A stretch of 64,000 bases of DNA from Zygnema circumcarinatum SAG 698-1b (lineage: Eukaryota > Plantae > Zygnematophyceae): assembly GCA_037447605.1 (NCBI GenBank), contig CM074810.1, positions 1,646,880 through 1,710,879 of the forward strand. The letters run 5' to 3'. Under the pieces are notes generated by a model, which was not told the origin of the DNA, made no database searches, and was given only the letters and a program-made list of their open reading frames with translations. A program made the position numbers and the translations under genes. Of this stretch, positions 3,725 through 62,199 are shown piece after piece (within the stretch, counting starts at the first letter, position 1; each line of letters starts with the position of its first letter).

Positions 3725-3777
3725 CCAATCACGATCTGCCACGTGTAACGTTTGCTGACGTGACGTGCTGCGATTGG
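3725..3777. promoter_or_regulatory. Inverted pair of CCAAT-N10-CACG elements in the divergent Nudix / coiled-coil gene promoter
   Basis: CCAAT-cacgatctgc-CACG at 3725-3743 and CGTG-acgtgctgcg-ATTGG at 3759-3777. Confidence 0.5.
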
Positions 3778-4873
3778 GCCAGCCAAGACACAGGATCCTT
3801 TTTGACTTCCTCGTTGTGCACTCGTCGTTAAGGGCCAATGGCAGCGACCGGACCTGCTTTCGTACATTTTGTACTTCCATATTGTTGTTGAACATGTTAC
3901 TACGGTACCAGAACATGGGCACTCGTGCATGGCAGGCTTTCTCTAGAGTATGAATAGGAAAAGGAAATGCAAAAATGGAAAAAAAGATGTTTCTAGAGCC
4001 GTGTCATTGCGCATAGGAGCATGCATGGAGAGTGTCGTACATACCCATTCGTTCGTTTTGTATAAGTGACTTTTGACCGGTTTGCATTGGTTCTACATAT
4101 TGCCTTTTGGATTGCATCCGAGACTAATGACAATTCCAATAAACATTCAACATTCAACATTTCAAAACATCCACGGTGGACCAATCACAGACGGCCTCGG
4201 AACTACAGAAAATCCATGAGCGCAAGTTTGCTTCTAAGCCCCGCAACAACAACAAAAATCAAACGACAACATCAACAACAACAACAACAACAACAACAAC
4301 GACAAAAACAAAAACAAAAACAACAACAACAACACGGATGGGGATGGCCGGAGGGGCGCCCGCCCGGGCCCGGCCTGTACTTCGTACCTATGTACGGTAC
4401 AGTATGCGTGTCCCATACAGTACTGTACATTGCCGTACAGCGCCGTTATTTGTCCAGTCGTACGGACCGTGAGTGCGTGCCACGTGGCGCGCCGGCGAGC
4501 CGCGCTCCTCCTTCCTCGGAGAGAGCCGTTGGAGGGAGCTCACGGGCGCGGCTTCAAATGCGCCCGCAAGCAGGGAGGCTCCGCTACACAGCTCTCCCTC
4601 CCTCTCTCTCTTACTTTCTCTCTCTTCCCCTCTCGCTCTCTCTCTCTCTCTCTCTCTCTATCGCTCTCTCTCTCTCTCGCTCCCTCTCGCTCTCTTCCAT
4701 ATCCTGTCGAGTCCCGCGCTCTCCCTCTCACGCTTCACGCCGGCACGCTTTCTGCTTCCTGAACTCTTTTCTGCAGTGTTCAAACACAGCGGTTGAAAAC
4801 GTGGAGAGTACGCACCTTTGGCAGCGGATTGGGTCGTATGAAGAAGACGTGAAACGCTCAAGACTGTTGAGAC

Positions 4874-7800
4874 ATGGCTGATATTTTCAAGTCGATGTGT
4901 GAATTGCTTCGTCTATTTGCTGAAGCTGTCCTTACGAATACGCGGAGTTTTCTACACATGCATGCGCATCCGACACTGGTGAATGCGTTGGAGACCATCC
5001 TTTTGGGACCCATGGACTATTTAATTCTCAAAAAATCTTCTTCTTTGGAGGAGAATCAAGCAGATGAGATTCCCTCCCTGGAAGCTGTTTCAGACCAGGC
5101 TCAGGTTGGAAGTTCTGAGAGCTTCGCAAAAACTTCATGCAGATATCGTCGTTTTCCAGGAGGAGGACGTGGCAGTGAGCAGCTTGCAATGCAAGAGTTT
5201 GAAGAAGTGTTTGACAGTGTGGAACGTGCAAACCTGCAGCGTATAGAAAGTTCTAACCAAATACTGAGCAGGCCTGGGCAGCCAGAAAAAAGTTCAAGCG
5301 GAGAATATTTGGCAGGCGATGTATCTGCAAGTAGTGAATATGAAAAGGCGATGAGTGAGGGAGTTTATGGAAGTTATGCAGATTTTACAGAAAAACTGAA
5401 CAAGGTGCTCATACAGTTGGATCATGTAAAGTCTTCAATCATGGGTGAGGTGCATAATCGGATGGATTGGATGGAGAAGAAGCGCCTTGAAGCCCTTGAG
5501 AAAGCCGAACATGAACGCCAGCTTCGACAGGTGGCGGAAGATGGCGTAGCAGTAAGCTTCTTCTAACTCTATCCTGCTTGATATTTCGCCAACTCCCAGA
5601 GAAGTACTCCCCCTCCTTTCCTCTCCTCTCTCTCTCTCTGTCTCTCTATTCGATGAGTGCGAACAGAAGGAAGGCAGAAATGAGAAAGAGAAGAGAAGTA
5701 GGTTTTTGTGTGTGTGAGGAGGGTTATCACATTTTCGAGGACTCTTTTGGCATCCCATCTGCGTAGTTCATAATTATTCTTATCGATGGCTTTTTGCTCT
5801 TGCAGGCTTTACAGAGCAAGATGGATAAGATGCAATTTGAATTAGCCGAGGAGAAGGCTGCAGCACGAAATGTAGCCGATAAGGTACATTCTCGCGTCTC
5901 TCGTCTCTCTCTCTCTCTCCTCTCTCTGTCGCTCTCTCTCTCTCTTTCTCTCTCTTGGTAGTCTGTTTCAGAAAAAGAGGAAAAGACGATTGATAGGACC
6001 AACTAAAAACTCTTACTCTTGGCAGGCTAGCCTCTTCCCTCAATGATATATTGTGAAAAGTATGCAGATAACATACAGTATTTCTAGCCTCTTGTACTTA
6101 GTTCAGGAGATCTGGATTCATGCATAGCATGGTTTGGTATTATCCATTCCAAAACGTCCTCCAAAACCCCGTTGGATTTGAGCAGATTTTGGGAGTTTCT
6201 GCGGCGGAGTATCAAGCTCTTGAAGCTCTTCAAGAGGAGAAGAGTCGGCGAGAGCAGGCGGAGGCAGCCGTTCAACTTCTCGAGAATTGGCTCCGTGAAA
6301 GCTTCGGACATTGCCGCAATCTGCAAGAGTCTAAATGTTTCAAACAGCAGCAAGTACATATCAGCTACCTCTTGCTATTTGTTTGTTTTTTTCTCTCTGA
6401 TGCTTACGTCCACGAGGCATGCGTATGTTTCTATTTCAAAATGAGCTTTGAACTTGTTGGAAATGTAATGAAAACATCTTGACAATGATGATTCTGAAAC
6501 GGACTTGAATTTTAGTTAAAAAGAGTTAAACTCTCAGTCATTTCTTTCAAGTATACACCTGGGAGTTCAACTGCAAGCCAAGAAGTGCAATATCTGACGA
6601 GTGCGGTAATCCAAGGCTGGATTGTACTGCTGTACAATACTCTTCACTCAGACGGATAAGTGTTTGCTTTCTAATGTTAGAATGGGATGCATTGGAAGTG
6701 CAGATATCGGCATTATTGGCGGAGCGGAAGCATTGGTGGGGAGGGAACAGCGGTCCTTCAGAAGACATGGAACTCCACTCTCCAAACCATTCTCCAAATC
6801 TGGCAGGTATAAATCTGCAATCTGCTGGCAAGTTTGCTGTTTTAAGCGGTCTTTTGATTCGGATAGAAAATTCTGAAACGGTGGATCGAACAGAATGTGG
6901 AACCTTAGTGAGTGGGAAAAAGCAGTTCACCACTTACAGTAAGCAGGGAAAGTCAATAGACCGTATGAAATTGATTTTGAACTTGTGTCAAAATACTATT
7001 GCGACAGCATGTGACTGATTGTCTTTGCATCTTCTTTGTTGACTGCTCCTCCTTACAGCGAAACTGCGGAAACTTGCTGAATCCGGTCTTAATTGCGGAA
7101 TACCCCTCCAACTCGACTTCGCGATCGTATCGAACTCCAAGAAAGTGGAAAACTCACAAAGTCAAAAGCTCTTATCACCTCCAAAACGAGGTGATCTTTC
7201 GCCTTCCTCCTCTGATTCGGCTACATCTCCTCTCCTCTCTCCCGCAATCCCTCCTCAGACCAATTGGAGTCCTCTCGCACCCCAGAACACTCCATTGAAT
7301 TGGCAGGGCCCCCAATGCATGGCTGCCACGTGGAGGGGTCTCGTTGATCATGTTGCAAGACAGCAATGGCAAGTCTGTGGAAGCTCACCATATTTCGAAG
7401 TTGCTGATCCGGAGACCCCGGAATACTACAAAAAGAATGCCAAGAAGGTTAATTTCATGGAAGTAGAGGAGAATGTGTGGCCAACGCAAGGAAGGGAGGG
7501 GCAGGAAACTGAGTTGAACAATATGGTCCATTGTTCGGGATCATCCCTATCTCTTGTCCTCCTTGGAGGAGATAAATCCCCAGCAGCTAGTATTCAAGTT
7601 GAACCAAAAATTAGGGCTCAAAACTCCTCTGTTCGAAGTCTGCGACCTCCATTGGCTAACCGTCAGATTGAATGTGGTGGTCCTCCCACTCCTTTGTTCG
7701 CTACAATCGTTCCGAACGTTTCAAGTTCAAGATTTTCTCCGTTTTCAGCTTTGATTTTGGCTCCCACTTTGAACGTTCCGACGAAGGAAAGTTCCACGAA

Positions 7801-7945
7801 GGCTGCTTCTCCATTGGCTCCTCTTCAGATCAACTCAGCAGTGCGTATGAGGAGTGTGAAGGGAAGGAGTGGGTCGAAGGCTGTGGGAGCAGAGAACATT
7901 GAGCCCTCGGTGGTTCGAAGAATGCGATTCTCACTGGAAGATTAA
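4874..7945 (+). CDS. Multi-exon hypothetical protein with coiled-coil segments and a Ser/Pro-rich tail
   Basis: A 230-aa non-repetitive ORF ends at a GTAAG donor (~5551). In-frame exons follow at ~5806-5883 (ALQSKMDKMQFELAEEKAAARNVADK) and ~6187-6351 (EALQEEKSRREQAEAAVQLLENWL). Further ORFs lie at 6674-7018 and 7145-7945. No recognisable domain; the middle splice sites are unresolved. Confidence 0.55.
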
Positions 7946-9528: not shown

Positions 9529-9574
<46 letters not shown>

Positions 9575-9584
9575 NNNNNNNNNN

Positions 9585-9628
<44 letters not shown>

Positions 9629-10921
9629 CAAGAAAACAGGGGCGGGATAACCGAAAAAGGGGGCGGGGGGAGGGGGAAGTACATAGTTCTCCGAAAACAA
9701 TGGCAAGTTCGGACGATATATCGCCAGCGATTCAGAAGCAGTACAGATACAAATAAGATATCGACACCACAATATACGCCAAGGCCGATATCGATATTGA
9801 TACATATTACGATATCAATATCCATACCAGCTACCGATACTGAACTATAGGGACAAGCGGACAAGACCAAGCCGCCCGGTTCGTACGGTTTTTCAGCTGG
9901 CAGGTTTACGTGGCTCCCCGTGATTGCTCATACTGACTGCTATCGATTGTCCGAGCAACACGTTTCACAATATTATTGGTTAATGTATTGTACAAAGTCA
10001 AGTTCCAACCTGAAAAGCCCATCCATCACAATAAGCGACAAAATACACATGTCGTATGGACTTGTTGTTTAGAAAACCAGGCCATAGGTTCGTACAAGCC
10101 TAGCTCCACCTGAATAAAACAACAAATTGAGTTGCTCGACGTTTTCAGTTCCGACAAGCCGACTGTTTCCGTAGCCGTACGCTACCTTACCGTACGAATT
10201 GTCCTATTTTTTCCTTTACCCGGCGATCGCGCTCCACGTCACTCCAGGAATGCCGAACTTCCTACGTGGTCTCCTCCGATTGGTTGAGGATATGCCACGT
10301 CACCTGCGTATTCCGTCTTCCACCACTCACAAGACGATTCCAGAAGTTTGTATGTGCCGATAGCGCGGTAGAAACACATGTTTTGTCGCTTCATGGATGG
10401 TTCGGAGAGGAAACTGGATCCAGGACAGCCAATCAGAGTTCGCCGGCGATTTGGACGGCTAACCGACAGGTCGGCCGTCGACCGTACACGGCGCCGGCTT
10501 CGTCCAGGACGGGACGGGGGCGTTGCCGGATGTCGACCGTTGCCGGTCAAAACTTGACGGCCGTCAATACCGTACAGTTGTTGATGCACAACAGACCTTG
10601 CTCATCGCATGACATGTATATTTGTTTTACAACTTGTGAGCTGAATTTCTTGGCTCGTTCATAATCCATTGACATTGTCTCATTCGTACCGAGATTCCTA
10701 CAGCATGGGAGAGACCTAGAAGCCTCCAAGAATGAACCCAAGGCTCCATTTGGATGCAAACCATGATCATGCTACATCGCGAGCCGCCTTGGACATTGTT
10801 CAATTTCGCTACTCGCTCTTGTGAGTGGTTCATCAAAGTATAGTTTGGAGTGAACCACATGTGAATTGTGGCATTTTTACTAGTCGAGCATGTATCCTTT
10901 CCCCTACAACATGAATAGCCA

Positions 10922-16406: not shown

Positions 16407-16444
<38 letters not shown>

Positions 16445-19187
16445 TGCACAGGATGATAGGGAGGGAGGGAGGGGAGGAAGGAAAGGGAGGGAGCGGAGGG
16501 GAGGGAGGGGAGGGGGGGAGTAGGGAGCGGGGAGGGGATNNNNNNNNNNAGGGAGGGAGAGGAGGGAGGGAGAGAGGAAGGGAGAGGAGGTAGGGAGGAA
16601 GGGAGGGAGGGAGGGAGAAAACTCTTCGAGTAAGCACTTGCATGTCCCTCACTCCCCCCTCCTCCTCACAGCCCTTATCCGGAGATGAGAGATGCAGGAT
16701 GCCCCCATATGCGGGTTGGAGGTGGAGTCCGATGAGGGCGGCTTTTGGGTGAACGCGGACAAGGTGTGCCGGCGGCCGCGGAAGGGGGCGAAGGGAGGGC
16801 AGTGGGAGAGGTGGGGGAGGTGCAGGGAGGGCCTTGTGGTGTGCGGGAGAGAGGCGTACGGAGACGCGAGGGAGCACGTGTGCAACAGGTGGGAGCGGGC
16901 TGGGAGCAGTGGGAGGGAGGGAGGGAGGGAGGGAGGGTGGGAGAGAGGGCGAATGTTGGACTATGTTGGATATTTTTGGATTCAAGTAGAGGATAGGATT
17001 GGGGTGTAGGGTGGTTGATGGTTGGTGGTGGAAAGAAGAGAAATTTCGGATATATATATATATATATATATATTGTTCTTTTTGTTTTTTCTGTTTTGTA
17101 TTGAAGTTTTTTCTTCCTGGGGGGGGGGGGGGTGAGGCAGTCCTTTAGTCTGGCGGCCAATCAGATGCCGCCACGTGGTGTGGACCTCGCCGGATCTTCC
17201 GCATGTGAACGCAGAAGCAGCCAAAAATGGCATTCTGAAACTGAAGGAGAAACTGCGGTTCTATGGGGACTCCACAGTTCGCGAGCTCAGCGATCTTTGG
17301 AAAATGTCATTTCCTAATTTTAAAGAAATTCAGGTAAGAATTTTACTCGCAGATGAAATTTTCACCTGCGATGTATGGAGTTCTTGAGACCATTTATGTT
17401 CAATGTTGGTGGGAGGGTTAAATTCTATGTAAATGACAGCTGTAAAATGTTCTCGCCCCCCTCTCCCTCGTTCTACACCTCCCCTCCCTCTCCCCCTACC
17501 CCCTCCCTCCTTCCCCACTCTCCCTCTCTTCCCCCCCTCTCTTCCCTCCCCCTCCCTCTCTCCACCCCTGCCTCTTTTCCCCACCCCCCCTCCCTCTCTT
17601 CCCTCCCCCCTCCCTCTCCTCTCTACCCCCCCTCCCTCTCTCCCCCACCCCCTTCCTCTCTCTCCCATCTCCTCCCTCTTTCCCCCCCTTCCCCCCCCAT
17701 TCTCTCCCTCCCTCTCTTCCCCCCCTTCTCTCCCTNNNNNNNNNNACCCCCCCTCCGACTCTTCTTCACCCCCCCTCCCTCTCTTCCCCCCCGTCCCTCT
17801 CTCCCCCATCTCCCTCCCCCCCCCCCCCACGGCTCCCCTTTTTTCTATTTTCCCTTTTGCAGTATAGTCGATCAGATTCGGTTCTTGCAAAGGGTCCAGA
17901 TCAGATATTATTTTCGGGAAATTGTGGCGGGGCAGCGGGCTCCGCCCTCACAACTATGACGGTGAGAAATTGCAAAAGTGATAAGCAGACATTATTTTTG
18001 GTACAAGATGCGGAAAAAAAGAAAAGCTCCCCCTCACATTGATTGCTGCATGTGAACTCTGTGACAGAAAATTCAAAGTTCAAAATCGAAATCGAAGGCT
18101 GAAATTGATACCTGACATTGAAAAACTTAACTTGAAAAACTGAAAATTTTCCAACTTGGTGTGCAGTTGCGAGACATTGCAACCTCCTGCGAACAAACTC
18201 TCCCGCATTGGCTCGAGCGGGCAGATTGGAAATTATTTATTTGGCGGAGCAGCCCGGCCTCGCACCCGTACTTGGGCCGCAGCCTATCAGCGAGCTTCGG
18301 GGGCTTCCACGGGCAGCGAATGTTCCTCACCAACGGGCAGCTAAAAGACTTCAACACCCTCACAAGGGGGTTGCTCGAGAGGTAGGTCAGATATCCCGAT
18401 ATATCCCGATACATGACGGAGAGGGGGGGAGAGGCAGGGGGGAGGGGGAAACGGAGGGGGGAGGGGAGGGGAGGGGAGGGGAGGGAAGGGGAGGGGAGGG
18501 GAGGGGGAGGAAGGAGGGAGAAGGGGTNNNNNNNNNNGGTGAGGGGGGAAGGGGGAGGGGGAATGGGGAGTGGGAGTGGGGAAGTGGGGGAGTAGGGGAG
18601 GTGAGGAGGAATGGGGGAGGGGGAGGGGATTGGGGGGAAAGGAGGGGGGAGCGGGAGAGGGGGGAGGAGAGAGAGGGAAGGGAGAGCGGGAGAGGGGGGT
18701 TGGTGGAGGGCACAGTGGGGGAGGAAGGAGGGAGGAAGTGGGGGAGGGGGAGAGGGAGAAGAGAGGCGAGGAGGGGAAGGGGCGATGGCGGGAGTGGGCG
18801 GGCGGGCGGGCGGGTGGGAGGAAGGGAAGGAGGGAAAGAGGGAGAGGGCCAAGGAGGGAGGGAGGGAGAAAGGAAAAAGAGGAAATATCTGAAAATAATA
18901 TCCCCCCCCCTCCCCCCCTTGCCCTCTTTCCCCTCTTTCATTTGTGGGTTATTTTTAACAGGAGCAGTTTAACGGATAAGCGATTTTTGTTCTTGGACGA
19001 GTTCGCCATAACGGAGCCCACAAAGGGAATGCAAACGGACGGGCTCCATGTGTTCTACAACACGGAGGCTCAAAACCTCGTGGTTTCATGGACCGTGTTC
19101 AACTGCTTCCTCTCCCTTCTGGTAGAGGCAATGCGGAAACAAATAATTGGCGAGAATTCGCAAAATTTCACGATGTCGACTTCGTAG
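14330..19187 (+). CDS. NXPE/PC-esterase-like (SGNH) putative O-acyltransferase/esterase: type II membrane anchor, Ig-like domain, GDS and DxxH motifs; start codon unresolved
   Basis: Phase-compatible exons: 14330-14437 (RFLRHIIAPVIVTVFLVTSVWLSL, TM), 15168-15547 (...FYARLNGPAIVLG...NGTIMFYFQPPLPGNYR), 15675-15750, ~16070-16240, ~16698-16887, ~17165-17333 (RFYGDSTVREL), ~17863-17961, ~18168-18381 (LFIWRSSP), and ~18961-19187 (TDGLH). Confidence 0.7.
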
Positions 19188-19860: not shown

Positions 19861-20347
19861 CTGCTTTCTTCAACTCTATTATGTATACTCCAATTCGGTA
19901 CAAAGTACCATCGCATGGCACTGACTATGGCAACACACTGGACGATGGGTTTTCATACAATGAGCTGAAGCATGCATCCATGTTGCCCATGTCGTCTCTA
20001 GGCTTGTCTCGTAGGGTGTGCCTTTAGCCAAGGCGGCTATGTTGTTTTATAGAAAAGCATGAGCGTCCATGTTGCTGTTGTTGTCTAGGCTCGCCTTTTG
20101 GTGTGTGCCTTGAGCATGCCCATCCATGTTGTCTAAAGACCTTTGTTCATGGGTCTCCGCCGCCTCACAACATGAAAACGCTCATGTTTTTGTTGGGCGC
20201 TAGTTCGACACGATGTTGCACCCCCAAAGGGGTTGTCCAATAAGAGGTCGCCACGTCACTTGATTAGTACACTTGACCGACCCTCATTGGTTGTGCTATA
20301 AAAATGCCACCCTCGCACTAACGACATCATCTAGGCCAAATCATCTA

Positions 20348-20925: not shown

Positions 20926-21208
20926 TAATGTAGGGGTCTAGACCCTAGCTGGACTCTAGACCCTAGCTAGACTTTAGACCCTAGACCATAGCTCTAGACA
21001 CCGCCGTACACCTGAAAGTACCGTCCATAGTCGTGACAATGTCCGGACACGGTGTACTTTTATTGGGGAGAGAATCTCCGTACAGTCACGTCACGCGGCA
21101 CGCTTCTACCCGTTGGAGGTGCCACGTGGCAGATCCACAGAGCCCGGACGTGGATTTCCGTACGCCTATGCTGCCACGTGGCACGCATTGGATGGACAGA
21201 GCCCCCTT

Positions 21209-21265
<57 letters not shown>

Positions 21266-23280
21266 ACAGCGCTTTCCTCTCCCACTCCAATCTGTCGTCT
21301 TGTGACCTCTCTCTCCTACTTGTCTCTCTCTCCTCCCCCACATCTTTCGCCCTCCTCGTCTAATCACCCCACTCCCATCCCATTCTCTCTCTCCATCCCT
21401 CCCTCCCCTCTCCTCGTCTCTCCTCTCCCTCTCCTCTCCTCGTCTCTCCTCTCTCTTCTCCTCCCTCTCTCACTTCTGCATAGATCACACAAATTATCAG
21501 GAGGCTTTGGACTGAATTGAACTGAACTGACCTGGCATAGGATCACAGTTAGGGTTCCTTTTACAGGAACATGCTTTTCTACATTTCGTTCCGTTCCGTT
21601 TTCTGTCGTTCCCTGCTCCAGGAGCTGCCTGAATCCTTTCTGGAGCATTGGGGCGGCCAAGAAGGTTAGCGACCGCCATGGCCGGCGACTGCTAGGATTG
21701 ATGCTTTGGGCCTCGCCGTCAGGTCAAGGATCTGGACGTCTTCCGCAGAGAGTGGAATATTGAAGGCAGGAGGAGTAGCAAAATGCATGTCGGAGGCCGT
21801 CGGGAGGTGCCTGCCTCCCTCCCTCCCTCCCTCCCCTCCCTCCCTCCCTCCCCTCCTTGCCCTCCGTCCCCTCCCTCCCTCCCCCCTCCCCCCTCTCCCT
21901 CGCTCCCTCTCCTCCCCTCCCTCTCCCCCCCTCTCTCCCCCTCGCCCTTTCTCTCCTCCCCTCTCTCCCTACCTCCCTCCTCCCCCGCCCGTCTCTCTCT
22001 ACCTTTCAAAACATTTGAATTGGACCTTTTGAGGCTTTGCACATGCTCCCTCACAAAGATCAGAACAGAAGTTTACAAGCTGAAGGATCGATCTCTCGCC
22101 GCCAGGTGTCACTTCGCGGGGCGAGTGCTCGGGAAGTTTCGAGAGATTCTCTCCTTTCTAAAGTTGCGGAAGAACGAGCCGTCAGGATTCATGCTAAGAA
22201 ATGTGCGGCAGCGGCCACTTTAATTCAGGTGAAGTCGATTGACAGGACCTTGCAACTAGTTTTTGCGATTAGACTTCAATTTTTTGGCAAATCGGGCTTA
22301 GAGAACGACATGGATAGAAGGAGAGCAGAGAGGGGGAAGGGAAGGGAGGGGGGAGAGGAGGGGAGGGAGAGCGAGTCAATGACAGGGAGGGTGAGGAGGG
22401 GAGGGAATGAGTTAGTCAACGGAAGAGTAGGAGAGGGGGTGCGAGTGTGTGAGAGAGAGAGAGGGACAGCAGAAATGAAGCGAGGGAGGGACGTAGGGAG
22501 AGGAGAGGGAGAGGAAAAGACGGACTCTACAATAGTCAAAGGGAAAAATCATGAATACCTGACAAAACACTCCCTGACCCAACCAGTCTCAAAATTCCTC
22601 AAATATCTTCTCTCTTTTTTTTTTTTTTTGAATTTTGTTTTATTTGCAGAGAGTGTGGCGAGGCCGGAAAGTGGCCTCAGAGTTTGCCCACGCTCGGAGA
22701 CAAGAATGGGACAAAAAATGGCTCTTAACTGGAAAACGACAAATTCCGGCGCAAGGCGGAGGGGGGGTTTCAGTGCAGGTTTTGGTGAATTCCATGTTGG
22801 GGCCTCTCATGTTCCTGCTCCGCCAATCAGGGAATGATACGTGGCGCGTGAACATTGGCTGGAGGGACGAGGAGAGGCTCAGATTGGCTCTCAGTTTGCT
22901 GCTCCAAAGCATCGACAATTTGGGTNNNNNNNNNNCCTCGATTCTCGTAATACTAATAACTCGATATTCGTAACATTTTGTTAAGTCTGACACCCCCTAA
23001 TGTAGGGGTCTAGACCCTAGCTGGACTCTAGACCCTAGCTAGACTTTAGACCCTAGACCATAGCTCTAGACACCGCCGTACACCTGAAAGTACCGTCCAT
23101 AGTCGTGACAATGTCCGGACACGGTGTACTTTTATTGGGGAGAGAATCTCCGTACAGTCACGTCACGCGGCACGCTTCTACCCGTTGGAGGTGCCACGTG
23201 GCAGATCCACAGAGCCCGGACGTGGATTTCCGTACGCCTATGCTGCCACGTGGCACGCATTGGATGGACAGAGCCCCCTT

Positions 23281-23337
<57 letters not shown>

Positions 23338-35148: not shown

Positions 35149-38100
35149 ACCCTATTGCAGAGCAAACCCTAATGCTTCCCCACCGCAGATTTTAGGGGTT
35201 TTGTTTGCGTTCTTACAGAGGGGCTAAGAATGTTTGAGAGGACGTTGTCTTAAAAAATCAAAATGGAAAAAAAATCGAAAAATAAAGACCTTAGATTTGA
35301 TAGAAACAAGCTTCAAGAGAGCCTTGCAGGAGGAGCTTCATCCTTGCAAGGAGCAGGCCTCCATTGGGTCCCATACTCGACCAACATCCAATAAGGATCC
35401 GCCGCGTGTCACTTCTGTACACGGGGCGAACCCTCATTGGATGGTAATCGACGGCAAGTTCCGGAAACATGTCAATATGTGAAAGGTTTCGAGATCAGGA
35501 TAAGAGCGCGTTCACACTACAAAAACAGGACTTTGACCCGCTCACACGTGAGGTTGCGATCTGGATCAGTTCTGGTAAACATGTGATTAGGGGTGGCAAA
35601 AATTCCTCGGCTCGATTTGGCTCGCCTCAAGTTTGCTCGATCACGATTTGTCTCGGTGCCTTTTCGTGAAGGGCTCAGCTCCTCCCCGATTCAAGCCGTA
35701 CAGGCGACCGAACTCAACTCACTAGTGAGCCAAATTTGTTCCGTATTTTTCGCTCACACGTTCGGATGCGGTTGGGATCGGGCTCGTCAACCGGCCTGTC
35801 CATTACGGCCGAGGGTTGTGCATCATCCAATGGGGACTCGCCGCGTGGCGAAATAGTACACGTGGCGAGTTACCATTGGGAAATGGTTGATTACAATTCG
35901 CAATGAAGGTCCCTAGAAAACAATCCACAAATCGAGCGAGAGTTTGGTTGTATGGAAGATTTTTTATACCCGTGCCCGTGCCCATGCCCATGCCTTCCAG
36001 GCACCTTGAATGCCTTCCAGGCACCTTGAATGGAGCCCGTGCAGAATACCGTAGGCTTCTGGATGCAAGCGCATACGCGTGAGAATGCTCAACGACGACC
36101 GAGTTTTGAACTCGACGACCCAATGTGAACACTTTGGTAGAAATTTCGGTTAGTTGTACGAATGAATGTACGGTCCAGTCTTTTGTTAGTTTCCACGCTG
36201 CCGAAATTCGATTCTCGGGCAGACAGAAATATTATGGATAATCCTTTCAGGCCTTTAAGCCAATAAGAATTCGTCACGTAGAAAGTTTGGTCCGCCGACA
36301 AGCCCGGATACCGCCAAAAACTGACCTTTAAAAAGACAAATCTCCCCGCCCTCGTACGATCCGCCCATTCATGGGCCGCCACATCAACAGAAGCGACAGC
36401 CTTACTTTGTCTTTTTTTTTGCCACGTGTCTGCGTGTCAATGGTCGTCCTCTCCCAAACATTGTCGTTTTGTGGCCACAGCGGATCCTCCCTGCTCCCAC
36501 ACGTGCCAGCGGGCACCTTAGCGCCCGCCACATGGCAGCTCCTCATGGCGTTTGTGCGACGTGGCCAAGTCCCATTGGCTCGGTCCGCTGCCGTTCCATG
36601 GAACGGGAGCCCGGAGGGACTTCTCCGCGAATCAGGGACCGTTGCCAGCTCTCCCGATTCGCAGGTCATTTCCGGTTCCGCGAAACGGAGCTCGACGAGG
36701 CCTTTTTCCTCCAATCACGCACTGTCACCGACAAGTCACACGTGTGTAAAGGCTATCCTATTGGCGGTGAAGTTTCCCCTAATAATCCCTCCGTTAACTC
36801 TGCCGTTAAACACGTCACCCTCGTTTCCGGCCTCGAATGGACCTCCAGGACCGCCAGTTAAGAATATGACGGGGACTTCGCACGTGTAACGTCATCCGAT
36901 TATTGGTGCAGGNNNNNNNNNNNNNNNNNNNNNNNNNNNNNNNNNNNNNNNNNNNNNNNNNNNNNNNNNNNNNNNNNNNNNNNNNNNNNNNNNNNNNNNN
37001 NNNNNNNNNNNNGGGAGGGGTGCAGGGAGGGAGATGGGGGGGGTGGGAAGGGGGGGAGAGGGGTGGGGGGAAGGGAGAGGGAGATGGGGGGGGGGAAGAG
37101 GGGAGAGGGGTGGGGGGAAGGTAGAGGGAGATGGGGGGTGGAGGGGGAGGAGAGGGGCGGGGGGAAGGGAGAGGGAGATGGGGTGGGGGGAGGGGAGGGG
37201 GGGAGAGGGGTGGGGGGAAGGGAGAGGGAGATGGGAGGGGAGGGGGAAGGGGAAAGGAAGGGGATCTCTTTTTGTTTGTTTGTTTTTTATGCAAGGAGGT
37301 AGGAGTAGGAGTGGTCGATGTACAGAATGGAAGGCGGGGGAGAGGGAGAGAGAGGGAGAGGAAGAGAGAGGAGAGGGGGAGGGAGAGAGGTGTGTAAAAA
37401 TGGATGTTCAGGCGAGAGGGTACTCTCGGCAAGTCCTCAAATTTGCCCAGTGAGTGACTTCAGGATTAGGGTTAGCTTTTTCCTGTTCTGTGCATGTACT
37501 GTAGGCGAAGGGAATTCACATGGAGCTGCAGCAAGAAGGATCCCTTCTCTCCTAGGTAGAACGGCTATAGAACAGGTAACGGAACAGTTTGAAACTCTAA
37601 TGCTCACATGGATATCACCTTTTTGTTTGAAAAAAAGAAAAGGATCAGCTAGGTGATGACAGCTTGGTGGTGTTAGAAGTTTTGCATCTTGTTGTTGAAC
37701 ACGCATCATTTCTCTTTGGACTATGTTGGTCATTGTGAGCTGATTTTTATTTCATGTAATGCTCAGAGGTTCAACAGAAGGTTGGAACTATGTCCAACAT
37801 GCCTGCTATATGCTCTGTTTCTGTTCAATCCCTCAGTTTGGTTGATAGACTAGTTTTCATGACAGATTTACTTATGTTATTTGTGCTCTTTCAAAACAAG
37901 GTACAGTACGGGACTGTATGGTCCAATGGATCAGTTAAAAAGTGGCCAAACATTGGCTGCCAATGCTTGGCAACCATTCCATTCGTTTTGATCCTTAAAT
38001 GGTGAATTAAAAGATTGGCGTTGATCTTACAATGGCGAGGCATGAATTGTGCATGAACAAGGGCAAAATGGAGAACCGAGGTTAAGCAATCAACCAGCAA

Positions 38101-40342: not shown

Positions 40343-40382
<40 letters not shown>

Positions 40383-42898: not shown

Positions 42899-42948
<50 letters not shown>

Positions 42949-43285: not shown

Positions 43286-43340
<55 letters not shown>

Positions 43341-44868: not shown

Positions 44869-46580
44869 GGCGGGAGGGAGGGAGGGAGGGAGGGAGGGAG
44901 GGAGGGAGTGGGGAAACGAGGGAGAGGGAGGGGGGAGGGAGAGGGAGGGGGGNNNNNNNNNNGAGGGGGGAGAGAGAGAGGGAGGGAGAGAGGCAGGGAG
45001 GGAGAGGAGAAACGAGGGTGAGGGAGGAGGGCGGAGGGAAATGGAGGGGGAGATCGGAAAGGGAGAGAGGGGGGGAGAGAGGAAGGGAGGGAAAGGGGAA
45101 GCGAGGGCGAGGAAGGAGCGGGGGAAGGAGAGGGAGAGGGGGAGGGGGAAGGGCGAGAGGGCGGGAGGACGGGGGAGGGAGACGGAGGAGGGGGGGAGAG
45201 GGAGGGGGAAGGAGGAGAGAGAGGGAAAGCGAGGGGGAGGGAGGGAGAGGAAAAGGGCGGGAGAGAGCAAGAGCTGGTGAGTGCAGAAAAGATTAGAAGG
45301 GCGCTGGAGGAGAAGCCTGGATCGTAAACTTTTGAACGCTAAAACTTCAACTTTAAAAGCTAAACCTAACTCTGGGAAAGGGTCGGGAAGGTGGCCGAGA
45401 GAGAGAGGGAGCGAGCGAAATAGTGAGAGAGAGAGGTGAGTGGGAGGAGAGCGAGAGGAAAGTGACTCCAGATTCCAGAAAGGGTCCGCTAGTTGGAACT
45501 TTTCGGAGAATATCGGGGGAGTATTCTCTGCACAATACGATACGGTACGGTACGATACGAAAGGTCCAAAACTTGGGACTGGCAGAAAAAACTGGATTTC
45601 GACTTTTTTGGACCTTGCGCAAAGTAATTATAAATTAATAAAATACTAGCGAATTACAACACGCCACGTGCCGATTATGTTGATGTGGCGATCCTTGATT
45701 GGGTTTTTTTGACAAGTGGTCGCGATGCAGGAAGGGCGAAAACATGTTCGTAAGGAGACTAGGGTAGAAATTAAAATTTGAATAAAAAGGACGACGCTGA
45801 TTGGATGGAAAATGAGCGGCGCAGAAATTGCGGAAAAGTCGGAAAATCGGATTCTGGGATCTACGGGATGCCAAAGTGCGAACCGAATGTCGCACAGTGA
45901 CTGGCTGAGATTTGTGTTACTGAATCGAAAGGCTCCAATTACGTCACGTGGCAGCACGTCAGGCTGTCCAGGATGCCGGGAATTGTCGGTGGACGGCAGC
46001 TGCCGCAAGATTCCGACGAACAATTTTTCCAGAAACCCTCCGAAGTCGGAAACAGAAAAGGGAAACCGGAAAACCATTTCATGGGTGGTACGGTACGGTC
46101 TGGTACCGTGTGAGTTGTCAGCTACTGTACTGTTACTGTAGTCGCAAGGTCCGGGCATGGGTCCATGCATGCATGCATGCTTGCTTGGGGCAGGCATGGC
46201 ATGGGGGCATATCGGCATGGGCGCATGTGTCAGGGGCCCTGACTCAGGGCCCTGAAGGGCGCAACCATGGCCATGAGGGGTCCCAGGCAGGACTGCTGAC
46301 GTCACTGAATTTGCGAGCTACAGCAACCGCAGTTTGCAGGCAAAAACTGGACCGCGGTTCGAACCGAGAAACCCCAACGCGGCTACGTCAGCTTCCCAAA
46401 CAATCGAGTCACGCCACCTGGCAGCGGCCAACTCGATCGTAGCCGTCTATTCTTATCCGCTAAAGTGCAGCCACGTGGTCGTTCGGCCCCCTAGTCGACA
46501 TGGGCTACCTTTAGGCGACCTGCCAGTTGTCAATGTAATGTATGCATGTTGTTAATGCATGTACAATGTATCGTCACGTA

Positions 46581-47531
46581 GGGTAGTGATATTTCCACCC
46601 CTTTTTTGGATCCAAACAGCCCTTCCCGGCCGGGCAGATTTCAAAAGGGATTCAAAACGGAAAATGCTTTTTTCACACCTTTTTGGAATCGATACCCACC
46701 TTCTTCCGTCGGGTGATTCTATTTTTGCTAACCAAGGAAAATGATACCCCGTCACTGCATTTTGAATACTGTATCCCGCCTCCCTGAATTTTTTTTTTGT
46801 GAGGGAAAGAAATATCTGCCAGCCCGAATCCGCTCGAAGTTGAAGATCCGTCCGCCACGAGATCATTCGCGGGTGTCCGTCCTTCACACGTGTGTGTCAA
46901 TCGCAGCTGTCAATTTCCTCGAGGATCGCACCACTGCAGGTCACCGTTCGATCTGCAGCCGGGCTCGATCTTAGCGAATGGAAAGCGCCCACGAGTCCCG
47001 TCAAAGCCGGATCGCACGTGCGAGTGCGCGCGTCCCTCGGCCCAAGATCTCGTCATTGTTAGCTCCCAGCCAATCAACAGCTGCCACGTGTTACATTTTT
47101 GACGTAGAAAATTTTGATTTGTCCAAGCTCTCAATGTACGAAATTTTGGGCTCCTCAAAGTTGCGACCGTACGACATTTGTACGGACAAACTTTTGAGGT
47201 GACTTTGGCGGGATACGTGGGCACGTGCCATTCGCTGTGACCGAGCCCGGCTGCAGATCAAATGATGATCTGCCGTGTTGCGATCTGCGAGGGAATCGAC
47301 GGCTGCGATTGACCGCACGCGTGAAAAAAAATTCAGGTAGGCGGGATATTCAAAATGGGGTGACGGGTTATCATTTTCCTTGTTTCGCAAAAATAAAATC
47401 TGCCGATGGAGGGTGGGTATCGATTCCAAAAAGGTGTGAAAAAGGCATTTTCCGTTTTTAATCCTTTTTGAAATCTGCCCGGCCGGGAAGGGGTGTTTGG
47501 ATCCAAAAAAGGGGTGGAAATATCACTACCC
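46581..47531. mobile_element. ~950-bp non-autonomous foldback DNA transposon with >300-bp imperfect TIRs and an 8-9-bp TSD (MULE- or hAT-like)
   Basis: Termini are GGGTAGTGATATTTCCACCCC...GGGGTGGAAATATCACTACCC. Arms ~46581-46985 and ~47222-47531 are inverted copies, with an ~80-bp insertion in the left arm. Both flanks read (C)GTCACGTA. Confidence 0.88.
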
Positions 47532-48544
47532 GTCACGTATTGTATCGCATCATGAAACATCGTTAATTATCATATCGTATCGCACCCTGCCACAACTCGC
47601 AAGTTGACAAGTGCGGAGCCGGCAAGGCACAAAACGACAAACATCCCGCCAGCGGCGGCAGCCTGCCAAACGGACAGACTCAAACATTGCTTTTCCCATG
47701 ACATCAACTCCGCACCACGTGGCGGGCAAAGGTTCCTCTGCGTCGAACAACGGCCCACGTGGCGCCATGCCAATCCAAACGATGTTGCGGGCATTGCGTA
47801 CGGACCGCTTCTTCAGCAGCCACGTGTTCAAATCAGTCAAGATACGGCCACGAGATGTACCGAGTCACCGACAGACTGGGGGACCTGAAAAAGAAGCTGC
47901 ACGGACACTCCCCTCGCAGGTTTGCCCAAAACCGACAAACTGCGATCAAACGGCGAAAAACGAAATATTGTCGCACGCGCGGGCCCGCCGTCTGCTGAAT
48001 TCGCCTCCCACGGCGGGAGCTTCCGCGCGCAAAATTGTCGTTATAGGGCCAGACCGCCAATAATACCTGGCCACGTCAGCACGCATTTTCCACCCAACCT
48101 GAAATATTGCCATCACGCGATCCACAACCAAGGGGTCGCATGTGTCACGTTGACGGCTGTTCGGATGCCGACAAAAAAGGACTCTCCAACCGTACGGAAA
48201 CGCAAGCAAGGCGGGGGTTTGACCTCGACGGGGGGCCATGTGGCAGACGGATGGCCGTCCGATTTGTCGGTGTGGGGAGAGCGCGCCGACAGGCCGTTGC
48301 GGCGGCGACTATTTGATCGCTCGTCGCTGCCTCCAATGCTCCACTGCCAGCGCTTGTGCGGACTCAAAATTGGAGGCAGAGAAAGCAAGGGAGAGAGAGA
48401 GGGGGAGAGAGCGGTAGAGACAGAAGGAAAGGAAGAGATAACTTAATAGTGAGGAAGAGATAAATTTATATTGAGGAAGGGGAAGAGTGGTAGGTGGCCA
48501 GAGAGAGACAGCGAGCGAAAGAGAGCGAGGGAGAGGGCCCAGCC

Positions 48545-50150: not shown

Positions 50151-51399
50151 CCGATTGGGGGTGGCTATCAAGGAATTGCGTTCTCCTTTTCAGCAGTTTT
50201 CTTTGTAGTTATGGGATGTTTCATAGTGTTCTGTTTGAGTGGGTGGCAGCTTGGACCATGTCAGGGCCATATGGTCCATGGTAGGGCATGCAGGCGTGAG
50301 GTCATGGAGGATGTATGTGTTTTTCTTTTGTGATCTTTTAGGTTGTTGGTTGCACTTGTTACAATTTGGGAAAATATTATTCAAGGTTAGGACTAGTTTC
50401 AACACGATAAGAAGATCATGGGCTCCCTTGGAAGAGGTTAGACAGAGCATTAGATCACAGAATTCAGGTTGTGTAAGTGTGTCAGTCTCATTGTTGTATC
50501 TTTACTCAAATCCGCGTAGAAATAAGAAAGGAAATAGGCAAAAGCTGTACCTTTTTGTTTCAATATTAAGACAATGTTTGTACCTACTTACATGATCAAA
50601 TCCTTCAATTTTCAAAGAAAATATCGAGATAATGCTTTTAATGTTCTTGCGGGTATGATTTTTCATTCAATCAATGTTTGTCCTTGGTCATATGTTGTTG
50701 GTAATAAGGTGACAGTCATGTAAAACCTAATAGCAAAGCATGGAAACGTTCCACAAACGGATTTTCTTACAAGTTGAACAAATTTAATTTGATGTCTGTG
50801 GGGAAGGTGAGTGGTTTTGATCGATTTAACACACAAATGAAACATAGAATTTGTTGCATAAGCGAGCTATACAGAACCTCCTAGAAATACACGCAACATG
50901 GAAATCCTTGTTAAACAAGGCAGTGAGAACAAGGTAGAATGTTGAGCTGGGGCCCTTGGGTTCACGTTCTGAAGTCACATCACGTATTAGGGCCGTAGGT
51001 CTACCAAATAGGGTCGTAGGTTCACGACTGTTCGAATGGTAAAACAGTTCCACGGACGACGTTCGAAATATTGTATTCACAAAAGTGTCTGCAACGTGGA
51101 ACGATATGATTGGTTACGTCTCCTCAAGAGGGCCGCAAAATATATGGGGCGTGATGTGACGCGTCAAGCTCGTGGTTGTCGCAATGTCTGACTCGAGGAG
51201 TGAAAAGTGGCCACACGAGGCACGCGTGACAGCTATCACGCTCAGCTGAGAGGCAGGCCTTAAAGCAAGACAAAAAATGACCTTTTTGTCGGCACGCTGT
51301 GGGGGGGAGGTGGAACTACAGGGCGGCGGGCGCTTGGGAAAGGTGCGGGAGGGGGAGGGCCCAGAGGAGGTCTCGGAGGGGCACTGTGGAACTTTCCGG

Positions 51400-59110: not shown

Positions 59111-59198
<88 letters not shown>

Positions 59199-60234
59199 TT
59201 TATCACTCTCACCCCTCTCCCACTCTCTCTCTATGACTTCCACTCAATCGATCACTTACACTCCTTTCCTCCCTCCGTCTCCCTTCTTCCCCGACTGTGA
59301 TTACTTTATCAAAAACTCGCGCTCTCTCTTCCTACCTCTCTCTCTCCTCCCTCCCTCTGCTCTGTCGAGTATTTTTAAAAATGTGTGCAAATCCCAAAGA
59401 TAGAATCTCTGCCTCGGCGTACAACGTACACTCATTAATATATTTTTCTTTATCTTCTATTTATCAAATCTTCCAACTTTAAATTAAAATCATTGAACTA
59501 AACGGCATTTAAAGCGCTACAACTCAATTGAATTTCATTGAATTCAACAAAAAATCAAAAAGAGCAGAAAAAATAATTTTAAAATGTAACGAAAAAAAAA
59601 ATGCTGTTAATTGGGGTAGTACCTAATAGAGCCTCCCGCGCTGAAGAGAGCGATGTCGACGTCTCCGAATGACTCCTCCGTCAGCTCTTCAACCACATAC
59701 TTCAGGCCCTGCGCGCACACCCCAACACAACCCAAAAATCCTATAAACAAACCAACGAGGAAATGCAGAAACACTAAAAGCCCAAAATGTCCAAAAAACC
59801 CAAAATTCAAAATACCCATAACCCTGAACCCTGAACCCTAACCCCAACCCTAGACCCTGAACCCTAACCTTAGACCCTGAACCCTAACCCTAGACCCTGA
59901 ACCCTAACCCTAATCCTGGGGGCCGCACGGGGGTACGGACCTCGAACTCAAACTCTTGGCCGGCGGAGCGTTTGCTGGCGAGCATCTTGATGCGGCTGTA
60001 CGGAAAGGCGCGGTCGTGCAGCACGGACAGAAACTCCTGCCCGACAGCGCCCGTCACGCCGACGATGGCCAATGAGGGGCCGTCAGCTGTCAGCGCCATG
60101 CGCGCCACGTGGCGCCGAAGGGGCGCGCGGGTGAGGGAGAGGGAGGGGGAGGGAGAGGGGGAGAAGGAGGAGGAGGGGTTGGGGGTCAGCCATGGCGAGC
60201 GGAGGGTCAGGCTGAGAGACTTCACGGCAGCCAT
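54531..60234 (-). CDS. asd: Plastid aspartate-semialdehyde dehydrogenase, ~11 exons
   Basis: Transit peptide followed by [43 protein letters not shown] (catalytic Cys), [45 protein letters not shown], and [20 protein letters not shown]. All lie in GT-AG exons. Confidence 0.96.
55740..55990. repeat. (GAGAGG)n hexamer microsatellite in an asd intron
   Basis: Long near-perfect GAGAGG array, representative of the GA/CT tracts in most introns. Confidence 0.9.
59820..59915. repeat. Telomere-like array (ACCCTAG/ACCCTGA/ACCCTA) at the 5' end of asd intron 1
   Basis: Direct repeats of AACCCT variants starting ~20 nt from the donor site. Confidence 0.85.
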
Positions 60235-62199
60235 TAGGGGCAATTGAAAGAGGGGAAGGGGAGGGAGGGAGGGAGGGAGGGAGCAGAGAGGGGAAGAGGA
60301 AGAGAGGAGGGAGCGAGGGATGACCGAGGGAGGGGAAGGGACGGGAGAGAGAGAGGGAGAGGGAGAGGGGAGAGGAAGATAGGGAAGGGAGTGGGCGGCG
60401 TGAAGTATGGTCCACGAGAAGGCGGCCTCCAGGACCTGAACCCTGATGCCGTACACTAACCGTACTATACCGTACGATACCGTACGGTAGAACGGTACTT
60501 CAGTCGGTAGTTTCAGGGTTCAGGGACTTTCAGGCCCGCGAGGGGATAATGCACCGACATTCCACCGACATTGAAGCCCTTTCTCTGTTGATATTAAGTT
60601 CAACAGGCCGTTCGACGGTGTTAGAACTGTTCACATGCTCGCATGCGCTTGTTGGGCAGGATATACTGTACCGTATCGTGCCTTAAATCGAATTGTACAT
60701 AAGATATCGAATTTGTTAATTTACACACCTTTTTGGATAGATACACGACTTTAAGATTTAAAAAAAAGTCTATTTACACACCTTTTTTGAATATATTCAC
60801 ACCTTATCTGGCTGGTCAGATTTCATTCTAGGATTTTTAGGATTGCTGTATGGGATTTTCTTAAAGGTGTATATGTAGCCAAAAAAGATGTGTAAATAAC
60901 AAATTTCAAAAAAATCCCTAAACCCTAAATCCTAAATATAATCTGACCTGCAAAAAAGGTGTGTATCTAGCCAACATAGCGGTGTAAATAGCATTTTTCC
61001 GTATCTTAATTTATGGACGTCAGGGGTCCTCATATTTTCCACCCTGGTTTTGGCCAATATGAGGCGAAAATATTGATTTTGCATATATAAGGTTCGTGTT
61101 ACCAATAGACGGGTGGTATTATGTTAGAGTTCATGTTGGACCGTACGTATCGTACCGTACTATATCGTACCATATCTGAGTGTTTCGTATCGTATCGGGG
61201 AGTATTTTATCGTATCGTATCGTATCGTATGGAAGCCAAGAAGAAGGGGAGAAGAGCGAGCGCCTCTTACGGCGGCACGTGCGGGGAGATTAGGTGAGTT
61301 TTGCGTAAGGCCGTAACGGCTACAGTACAGTAGTACAGCTAGTACGGCTAGTACGGACAGTACGGACAGTACGGCTAACACACAGTTACCGTACAAAAAG
61401 GTGGTTTCGGCAAAATCGGGGCGAAATTCTTGGGGACGCACTCAGGGCGGTAAATACCAGGACCCCTGAATGTATATGGCCCCATATTGTACGGTACTCT
61501 ACGAACTAGCCGCGCCCTGAAAGCGAGCGAGGGTTTGGCAGACGGCCAATTGGCCGCGTCGCTGTCGGCACCGACCTCCCCGACCTGGCTCCGTAGGATG
61601 CTGACGGCCATACGGTACGGTCACGGACCTTCAGAAGCCCATAGACGAATCCTGATGTGCCACGTGTGCAAAAGGATAACCACGTGGTTTTGGCCACTAG
61701 CCTGACCGTTGAGTGCGTCCCGACAAACGAATTAGGTACGAAAGCACAGAGGTTTGACGTGGATCAACCAAAATGTGCCACGTAGTTAGAAATTTTCCAC
61801 TTTTTTTCGTCACAAATTGCTGATCTATTTTCAAGGATCTGTTCCGGGTCTACTAAGATATTACGAGGAGATCAGGACGGCCACGTCACCTAATTTCTGA
61901 CGTGGAAAGCTGCGATTGGTGGATGTGACCTAGGAAATCCTTATAGATACAAGTTGATCACTGTACTGTACGTTCGTTGATCATGACCCGTCTTGAACTC
62001 TCTAGCCGTTCTGTGGGGGCTACCTCACAACACCAACAACAACAGCAAGATCCATAGTGTGAACACTTTGCGGTCCAGTGTGAATAGGTCCTATTTTATC
62101 TCGATCCCGTCCAAGAGAGGTTAATGACCTACAAGCTTCTCCCTCCTGTAGATTCAGTTATTTTTTTGGACCAAATTCTGTCCAAATTTTTGGTTCAAG

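Follow-up and report, generated by a model that had tools for sequence, protein, structure and literature searches.

In the window (the whole stretch of DNA that was analyzed, 64 kb), the spaced pair CCAAT-N10-CACG occurs in a large excess at this one spacing, and it is probably a genuine selected cis-regulatory composite, in which an NF-Y-type CCAAT box is coupled to a bZIP-type half-site and which would act as a general module in this alga. The exact composite was found 17 times on the two strands, or one composite per ~3.7 to 4 kb, and 16 of these sites are independent, because the copy at 22840 is an assembly overlap. Dinucleotide shuffles yielded a mean of 0.17 sites (maximum of 3), half-site abundance predicts ~0.4, and the other spacings between N0 and N40 average ~1 site each; the excess at N10 is thus 16- to 100-fold, and the probability of at least 16 sites given an expectation of 1.0 is 2e-14. 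One-mismatch variants peak at the same position, with 17 at N10 versus 0 to 7 at every other spacing. The original prediction of a ~30-fold over-representation is therefore confirmed against shuffle, half-site, and other-spacing backgrounds of ~0.2 to 1, and on the scale of the window the N10 peak is retained after correction for half-site abundance. All 16 coordinates that it gave are exact matches, and its list lacked only the site at 36260 (+), while the near-misses that it described at the same spacing are real (CGAAT at 25253 and 61646, TGAAT at 26301). Flanks and spacers of the composites are unrelated, so that the sites do not belong to a single repeat family.

The composite takes three forms: single sites, facing dyads, and, once, one core between two CCAAT boxes. 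The five dyads share the same 53- to 54-bp geometry, CCAAT-N10-CACGT-N12-ACGTG-N10-ATTGG. Sites outside the HECT exons and the transposon discussed below are as follows.

3725..3777: dyad, 53 bp, both halves exact (3725+ and 3759-)
7312..7330, (+): exact composite within a 300-aa ORF (7043-7942)
10265..10283, (-): exact composite from the motif search
17157..17175, (+): exact composite on a 1.2-kb contig flanked by two gaps
20237..20290: dyad, 54 bp, exact at 20237+ and one-mismatch at 20271-; in collapsed coordinates, UPL7 exon 1 follows ~1 kb downstream
22840..22858, (-): artefactual duplicate of the site at 24914, from an unmerged contig overlap at gap 22926
35388..35440: dyad, 53 bp, both halves one-mismatch, upstream of the phosphatase ATG (258-310 bp)
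35827..35879: dyad, 53 bp, one-mismatch at 35827+ and exact at 35861-, ~700 bp ahead of the phosphatase ATG
36260..36278, (+): exact composite, TCACG variant
36560..36578, (-): exact composite from the motif search
45650..45702: dyad, 53 bp, each half one-mismatch
48057..48075, (+): exact composite, with a diverged inverted copy at 53184-53203 that keeps CCAAT and has CACAT instead
51095..51113, (-): exact composite from the motif search
61901..61919, (-): exact composite, with a one-mismatch site at 61646+ nearby

The assembly overlap is well delimited, as 20864-22925 and 22936-24999 are the same sequence and lie immediately on either side of gap 22926-22935. Redundant flanks occur at three gaps only (12930, 22926, and 52723), and no composite touches a gap. 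A 7.3-kb ORF proposed for this DNA could not be upheld; the longest ORF has 498 aa, and the region is made up of small contigs, gaps, and the 2-kb overlap.

The full motif reads RR-CCAAT-[C/G]R-N6-GC-CACGT-[G/C/A], with preferred spacer bases C at +1, A at +2, and A at +4, followed by GC ahead of CACGT. CACG is followed by T in 17/17 sites, and the canonical ERSE-I string CCAAT-N9-CCACG is present in 15 sites overall and in 14 of the 16 independent ones. Composites match the flank rule RR-CCAAT-[C/G]-[A/G] at 3.06 of 4 positions versus 1.98 for the 111 other CCAATs (p=0.0025), and T at +1 occurs in 0/16 composites versus 27/111 other CCAATs, flanks that are consistent with the NF-Y rule. The base after CACGT varies: six cores are the CACGTG palindrome, six are CACGTC (followed by A in five cases, giving TGACGTG), three are CACGTA, and one is CACGTT. 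The variants CACGTG, CACGTCA, and CACGTA are bZIP-compatible by sequence. A bHLH protein requires the CACGTG palindrome, while TGACGTG-type hybrids are typical bZIP sites. Of the two kinds of partner originally named, bZIP appears to fit the variable second core half better, given the bZIP-like TGACGTG, and bHLH appears less likely because only 6/16 cores are CACGTG.

There are 56 oriented GCCACGT half-sites, and CCAAT accompanies 11 of them, always at exactly N8 and never at a different offset. The G-box palindrome GCCACGTGGC is ~200-fold enriched, and its standalone copies lack any CCAAT-like partner; the two boxes are therefore separable elements. At the second half-site, G stands in 6/16 composites versus 31/41 standalone G-boxes (p=0.012). 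Around 32 oriented sites, no positioned TATA, Inr, or third box turned up apart from the dyad partner.

These patterns suggest that the extended G-box half-site GCCACGT, held at a fixed N8 from the NF-Y-type CCAAT box, has a bZIP dimer as its most likely reader. A weaker second half-site is tolerated in CCAAT-coupled cores, which is what help from the CCAAT-bound partner in bZIP binding would lead one to expect, and the composite is part of a wider G-box excess in the genome. The ERSE-I grammar would then serve this streptophyte, probably zygnematophyte, alga as a general promoter or enhancer building block and not as a stress-specific switch. Copies appear to have spread at least partly via fold-back Mutator-like transposons, and some sit in tolerant, non-conserved segments of coding exons. 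The analysis directly shows the statistics, the geometry, the exonic location, the transposon, and the absence from relatives, while the binding proteins, their cooperativity, and promoter activity are what we infer from the sequence.

A Pfam scan of 30 ORFs matched only HECT, His_Phos_1, and DUF829, and those neighbours of the composites that could be identified comprise a transposon and genes for a HECT ligase, a chloroplast phosphatase, and a DUF829 protein. ERSE-I and pERSE act from the promoters of genes for ER chaperones, ERQC, or ERAD, which they make inducible by ER stress, and no such gene was found among the identified neighbours in the window. The suggestion that the element is not ER-stress-specific is supported, as the composite is too dense and adjoins the wrong kinds of genes for an ER-stress-only regulon. 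Its placement near most promoters is demonstrable for one gene only, the phosphatase.

34309..35130, (-): At3g52155-family chloroplast histidine-phosphatase gene, single exon, adjoining dyads

The RNA evidence consists of assembled contigs covering one 3.3-kb stretch, so that closeness to a promoter could be shown for one or two genes at most; at UPL7, the first transcript contig is preceded by two TGCCACGTGGCA boxes, 50-150 bp upstream of it. The label NXPE finds no footing, as the ORF around 7312 has neither a Pfam match nor a homologue in our search.

Copies reported in UPL7 exons are real, since RNA contigs place the sites at 24897/24914, 25253, 25346, and 25477 within spliced coding exons of the HECT (UPL7-like) gene.

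24897..24932: palindrome CCAAT-N10-TACGTG-N10-ATTGG with a single core, in UPL7 coding exon 3 (24721-24996)
25212..25779, (+): UPL7 (HECT E3 ligase) exon 4, spliced in RNA contigs
25253..25272, (+): one-mismatch composite (CGAAT), exon 4
25346..25364, (+): exact composite, exon 4, in a variable gapped protein linker
25477..25495, (+): exact composite, exon 4, in a ~23-residue insertion that none of the homologues has

Exon 4 also contains standalone G-box cores at ~25581 and ~25627. The exonic copies lie in different frames and on both strands, and encode unrelated peptides; the protein segments that they occupy are non-conserved or are lineage-specific insertions. Strong sites number 8 in UPL7 exons and 0 in the intervening introns (p=0.002). 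Codon-usage scoring of ORFs near sites (969 training codons) was weak and biased toward open frames, and exon calls were made without it. Several strong exonic sites are 1.6-3 kb downstream of the transcript start, which is odd for an ordinary enhancer. A transposon footprint at 25477 was considered and rejected, as the flanking short inverted and direct repeats are too short to tell from chance.

One exact copy does sit in a transposon. Mutator-like elements are recognized by long terminal inverted repeats (TIRs) and a target-site duplication (TSD) of 9-11 bp.

46581..47531, 951 bp: fold-back Mutator-like element with ~216-bp TIRs and a 9-bp TSD, CGTCACGTA

Its TIR arms (46581-46796 and 47324-47531) are 86-96% complementary, inner arms extend the fold-back, and CGTCACGTA stands directly on both sides as a perfect duplication. 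The element carries the exact site 47070+ at its centre and the one-mismatch site 47215-. No autonomous MuDR-type partner was found within the window, and among 25 sites examined for a surrounding TIR or fold-back structure, only 47070 had one.

In orthologous loci of relatives, ~85 kb contain 1 composite versus ~23 expected; the comparison covers seven loci from fairly distant species (33-75% protein identity), among them two Closterium species and Marchantia. The composite thus has the look of a general promoter element specific to this lineage, and not of a switch reserved for stress. Of the proposed genome-wide code, the part that stands is a density above that of an ER-stress-only regulon, while the near-absence from these loci makes any such code lineage-restricted.

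Several other explanations must be weighed. That base composition, coding constraints, or assembly redundancy generate the composite as a by-product is the least probable of them and is already refuted for this window by the shuffles, the spacing, and the one-mismatch peak: one site is indeed an assembly duplicate, three gaps have redundant flanks, and GCC-ACG codon pairs are favoured in GC-rich exons, but 16 sites are left once overlaps are taken out, shuffles and other spacings yield only ~0.2-1, the exonic copies share neither frame, strand, nor peptide, and the coding sequences of the HECT domain and the phosphatase are free of GCCACGT. Hardly more probable is a classical unfolded-protein-response (UPR) element whose ER-stress regulon happens to be dense in the window. 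The exact ERSE-I string in 14/16 independent sites and pERSE in all of them would suit such an element (PMC3645738), but one site per ~3.7 kb, the four identified neighbours named above, none of which is a chaperone or ERAD gene, the sites inside coding exons, and the lack of the composite in orthologous loci of relatives, in which the UPR is conserved, all speak against it. We also regard it as unlikely, though less so, that the composite has readers other than NF-Y and bZIP, be it a bHLH partner of the PIF/USF kind or one bipartite DNA-binding protein specific to the lineage, with a function that may differ from transcription activation and lie, for instance, in boundary or insulator activity or in nucleosome positioning. 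The composite does behave as one ~20-bp unit with preferred spacer bases, it is present in exons and transposons besides intergenic DNA, and human NF-Y pairs with the bHLH-Zip proteins USF and MAX at 10-12 bp (PMC4889920); against this, 10/16 cores are not the CACGTG palindrome and include hybrids of the TGACGTG type, the CCAAT flanks fit NF-Y, and GCCACGTGGC palindromes that stand alone without a CCAAT-like partner mark the boxes as separable.

A doubtful but more serious rival is that mobile DNA carries the composite mostly as a passenger, an internal promoter cassette of fold-back Mutator-like elements or their fragments, scattered genome-wide and landing in frame in tolerant exon segments, with most copies having little or no host function. 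The element at 46581-47531, with its TIRs, perfect TSD, and 47070 at its centre, speaks for this, as do the site at 25477 in an insertion absent from all UPL7 homologues, the one at 25346 in a gapped variable linker, the lineage-restricted excess that recent amplification would give, and the plant precedent of transcription factor motifs amplified by MITEs (PMC5950925). However, a recognizable TIR structure surrounds only 1/16 exact sites, flanks and spacers are dissimilar while boxes and spacing are invariant, which points to selection on the boxes after any dispersal, and the NF-Y flank rule as well as the compensation between half-sites suggest that proteins bind. The selected NF-Y/bZIP composite remains our preferred reading, and a bolder one, which we put forward only tentatively, is that CCAAT-N8-GCCACGT and its 53-bp dyad are a promoter cassette that moves and propagates itself on fold-back Mutator-like elements and that became the default promoter architecture of one zygnematophyte lineage. 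This bolder reading includes in-frame insertion into coding exons, where the cassette might act as an intragenic promoter or enhancer. If it were true, this lineage, unlike its relatives, would have rewired gene regulation across its whole genome to centre on a single NF-Y/bZIP pair.

Fixed-spacing two-factor composites are rare, clear examples of cis-regulatory grammar, and in this alga, which is closely related to land plants, such a composite appears as a general module, ~100-fold enriched, with dyads, a transposon-borne copy, and exonic copies, and nearly absent from the orthologous loci of relatives. It may offer a tractable system for the co-option of a stress element into general promoter architecture, for the transposon spread of whole composite elements, and for regulatory sites carried by coding sequence. 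The literature searched gave no account of the composite as an element of general use in algae.

In animals and flowering plants, the composite is known as a specialised ER-stress switch, bound as ERSE-I or pERSE by NF-Y together with ATF6/XBP1 (mammals) or bZIP28/bZIP60 (plants). Plant G-box elements of the GCCACGTGGC type are bound by group G/H bZIPs; they share the extended flanks seen here, where standalone palindromes are likewise abundant, but differ in that ~1/5 of the half-sites here are hard-wired to CCAAT at N8 and tolerate a degenerate second half. ERSE-I is CCAAT-N9-CCACG (mammalian) and pERSE is CCAAT-N10-CACG (plant), both read by NF-Y plus bZIP (PMC3645738). The likeness originally claimed is exact, with pERSE in 17/17 sites: boxes, order, orientation, and spacing are the same, and NF-Y-type flanks with a bZIP-type ACGT core fit the two-factor architecture (PMC3645738). 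The composite here differs in its density of ~1 per 4 kb, its position near non-ER-stress genes and in coding exons and a transposon, its frequent doubling as a 53-54 bp facing dyad, and the T that always follows CACG. The human NF-Y/USF-MAX CCAAT-E-box module, stereo-positioned and with a CACGTG-type core, is found at many ordinary promoters and is carried by repeats, including LTR12/ERV9 (PMC4889920, PMC3730095). Its CCAAT-to-E-box distance of 10-12 bp includes the single peak at N10 seen here (PMC4889920), whereas the composite in this algal lineage has one sharp spacing and a mostly non-palindromic G/C-box hybrid core, which points to bZIP and not bHLH-Zip. Finally, plant MITEs have brought about lineage-specific amplification of transcription factor-binding motifs (PMC5950925), and the non-autonomous TIR element at 46581-47531, with its target-site duplication, carries the motif in a similar way, but most copies here are without transposon hallmarks, and a two-factor composite is carried in place of a lone motif.

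The composite CCAAT-N10-CACG has 17 exact matches in the window, counting both strands, compared with 0.17 on average, and never more than 3, in dinucleotide-preserving shuffles. Across spacings N0 to N40 there is a single sharp peak at N10 (17 sites), most other spacings holding 0 to 3, while half-site abundance (137 CCAAT, 387 CACG) predicts about 0.4 per spacing; with an empirical mean of about 1 at the other spacings, the probability of at least 16 sites is 2e-14. One-mismatch composites likewise peak solely at N10 (17 versus 0 to 7), and the smaller peak at N27 (6 sites) comes from the second core where two composites face each other. The over-representation claimed in the original prediction thus withstands correction for half-site abundance, and the absence of an N10 peak, which had been named as its refutation, does not apply. 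Its site coordinates were all correct by exact search, with one site, 36260 (+), overlooked. A second, weaker spacing class, CCAAT-N15-CACG, has 6 sites (283, 333, 464 and 45935 on the forward strand; 36737 and 36879 on the reverse), three of them close together within the window's first 500 bp; its core is mostly ACACGTG, not GCCACGT, and it may be a different composite.

The gap at 22926-22935 is an unmerged contig overlap (20864-22925 equals 22936-24999 at 99.8%, the copies abutting the gap exactly), which makes site 22840 an artefactual duplicate of 24914. The gap at 12930 has the same direct overlap structure (10922-12929 equals 12940-14947, about 2 kb, 99.1%). At the gap at 52723 (region 52285-53317) both flanks are inverted copies, of 49695-50130 and 47941-48527, with 100% and 99.75% identity over the 400 bp on either side. 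The remaining gaps of the window have no redundant flanks, and no composite touches any gap. Gene models and motif counts across gaps 12930, 22926 and 52723 are inflated; with the redundancy removed, about 59.7 kb holds 16 independent exact sites.

A T follows CACG at all sites, and 14 of the 16 independent sites read CCACG, thereby matching the canonical string of the ER-stress element ERSE-I, CCAAT-N9-CCACG (PMC3645738). Their consensus reads RR-CCAAT-[C/G]-[A/G]-N-A-N4-G-C-CACGT-[G/C/A]. The possibility that all copies derive from one repeat family fails, because the sites share neither their flanks nor most spacer positions and self-BLAST of the window found no common repeat, assembly artefacts aside. 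One transposon does carry the motif: the 951-bp fold-back element at 46581-47531 has terminal inverted repeats of about 216 bp and additional inner arms and is bordered by an exact 9-bp target-site duplication, CGTCACGTA; its terminal repeats and duplication mark it as Mutator-like and non-autonomous. Exact site 47070 sits close to its middle, and it also holds one-mismatch site 47215; no terminal-inverted-repeat structure was found around other composites. In a diverged inverted copy (48057 versus 53184), CCAAT is retained, five spacer bases are changed and CACGT has become CACAT. Several composites face each other in dyads of the form CCAAT-N10-CACGT-N12-ACGTG-N10-ATTGG, and neither a TATA box nor any other element at a fixed position was found beside the sites.

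Facing dyads and a related arrangement
3725/3759, dyad, 53-54 bp
20237/20271, dyad, 53-54 bp, about 1 kb upstream of the first UPL7 transcript contig start in collapsed coordinates
35388/35421, dyad, 53 bp, 258-310 bp upstream of the phosphatase ATG
35827/35861, dyad, 53-54 bp, about 700 bp upstream of the phosphatase ATG
45650/45683, dyad, 53-54 bp
24897-24932, lone ACGT core between two CCAAT boxes

The exonic copies lie in a UPL7-like gene, whose exons follow from aligning RNA contigs, assembled from three to four runs, to 22936-26260.

UPL7 exons from RNA contigs
exon 1, at least from 23346 to about 23876
exon 2, about 24178-24299
exon 3, 24721-24996
exon 4, 25212-25779

The splice joint 24996>25212 (GT..AG) is present in three runs. 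A HECT domain lies at 29.8-30.3 kb and a 1200-aa HECT homologue aligns with the N-terminal part of the gene, which on homology is a HECT E3 ligase. The apparent start codon ATG 24117 was rejected as it is intronic in the RNA contigs; with exon 2 beginning at about 24178, the true start codon must be in exon 1. Two TGCCACGTGGCA boxes precede the start of the first transcript contig by 50-150 bp.

Composites 24897/24914 are in exon 3, and 25253, 25346 and 25477 are in exon 4 together with two more GCCACGT cores, so that the copies predicted within UPL7 exons do occupy real, spliced coding exons; the near-miss TGAAT at 26301 lies just ahead of the conserved part of the next coding block. These exonic sites occur in differing codon phases, on both strands and in unrelated peptides, and so represent a DNA-level feature and not a protein repeat. 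They are located in the least conserved segments of the protein: 25477 in an insertion of about 23 residues missing from all seven homologues, 25346 in a gapped linker, 25253 where conservation is limited to a Trp codon, and the exon 3 site opposite a non-conserved stretch. In the UPL7 5' region (24721-26460), all 8 GCCACGT cores of a 2.2-kb stretch are exonic and the three intervening introns have none (p=0.002). At 25466-25519, inside the lineage-specific in-frame insertion, a short inverted repeat (GCGGATGC / GCATCCG) and GTGCAA...ATGC direct repeats enclose site 25477; these may be a small-element footprint but are too short to tell from chance.

NF-Y prefers the flanks RR-CCAAT-[C/G]-[A/G]. 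Composite CCAATs agree with this preference at 3.06 of 4 positions, versus 1.98 among the 111 remaining CCAATs (p=0.0025), and are never directly followed by T (0/16 versus 27/111 elsewhere). The base after CACGT varies among the 16 composites (G 6, C 6, A 3, T 1), and in five of six cases CACGTC is followed by A, giving TGACGTG hybrids; this variable second half-core would fit bZIPs, not CACGTG-requiring bHLHs. GCCACGT itself occurs 65 times in the window (about 8 expected), and the 10-bp palindrome GCCACGTGGC has 12 copies in non-redundant sequence versus about 0.06 expected (3610, 4479, 11143, 11703, 23193, 23245, 25266, 25490, 25627, 57113, 57135 and 60104), most without a CCAAT partner and three in UPL7 exon 4. 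Among 56 oriented GCCACGT half-sites, CCAAT lies at exactly N8 in 11 and at no other offset. A G follows in 31 of 41 standalone G-boxes, completing the palindrome, versus 6 of 16 CCAAT-coupled cores (p=0.012); fewer palindromes in coupled cores would be expected if a partner bound at CCAAT assisted cooperatively. From these sequence patterns we infer NF-Y-type and bZIP-type partners, acting cooperatively, at the composites.

The phosphatase gene is an intact single-exon gene (34309-35130, reverse strand, 274 aa) for an At3g52155-family chloroplast histidine phosphatase, single-exon in Closterium too; its nearest relatives belong to the Zygnematophyceae (75% identity to an ENA contig, 71% to Mesotaenium, 68% to Closterium), and the source organism is accordingly placed close to that group. 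Pfam searches of 30 ORFs matched only HECT, His_Phos_1 and DUF829, and no ER-stress genes were found among the identified neighbours. The ORF originally labelled NXPE has neither Pfam match nor homologue, and the proposed 7.3-kb ORF dissolves into small contigs, gaps and assembly overlap, the longest ORF being 498 aa. Low-complexity tracts of a long, degenerate (CT)n/(GA)n type (26300-27400, 12400-12900, 43700-44060, 55700-56050 and others) are extremely skewed in GC and AT (down to -0.77), mostly intronic and alike across loci, and give many spurious long ORFs (SLSL, ERER peptides).

Orthologous loci from Closterium NIES-68 and NIES-53, a Logan contig, Marchantia paleacea and the 75%-identity relative, with two genomic UPL7 5' regions of the nearest homologues, total 84.9 kb and contain one N10 site versus 22.8 expected at window density (P=3e-9), and only 5 GCCACGT. 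As far as this limited sample reaches, the near-absence indicates that the excess, the exonic cluster included, is lineage-restricted.

Taken together, our observations show a real, strongly non-random and lineage-restricted use of a known two-factor composite, which probably serves as a general regulatory module, its function and binding being read from sequence. Our literature search found no account of the composite as a general element in algae. The ERSE-I/pERSE grammar combines NF-Y with a bZIP (PMC3645738); the window composite matches its sequence definition but departs from it in gene context. Plant MITEs provide a precedent for transposon-borne motif amplification (PMC5950925). The human NF-Y/USF module, with 10-12 bp spacing and present in repeats too (PMC4889920, PMC3730095), differs in its palindromic E-box, which the window composite does not consistently have, but resembles it in spacing and in carriage by repeats.
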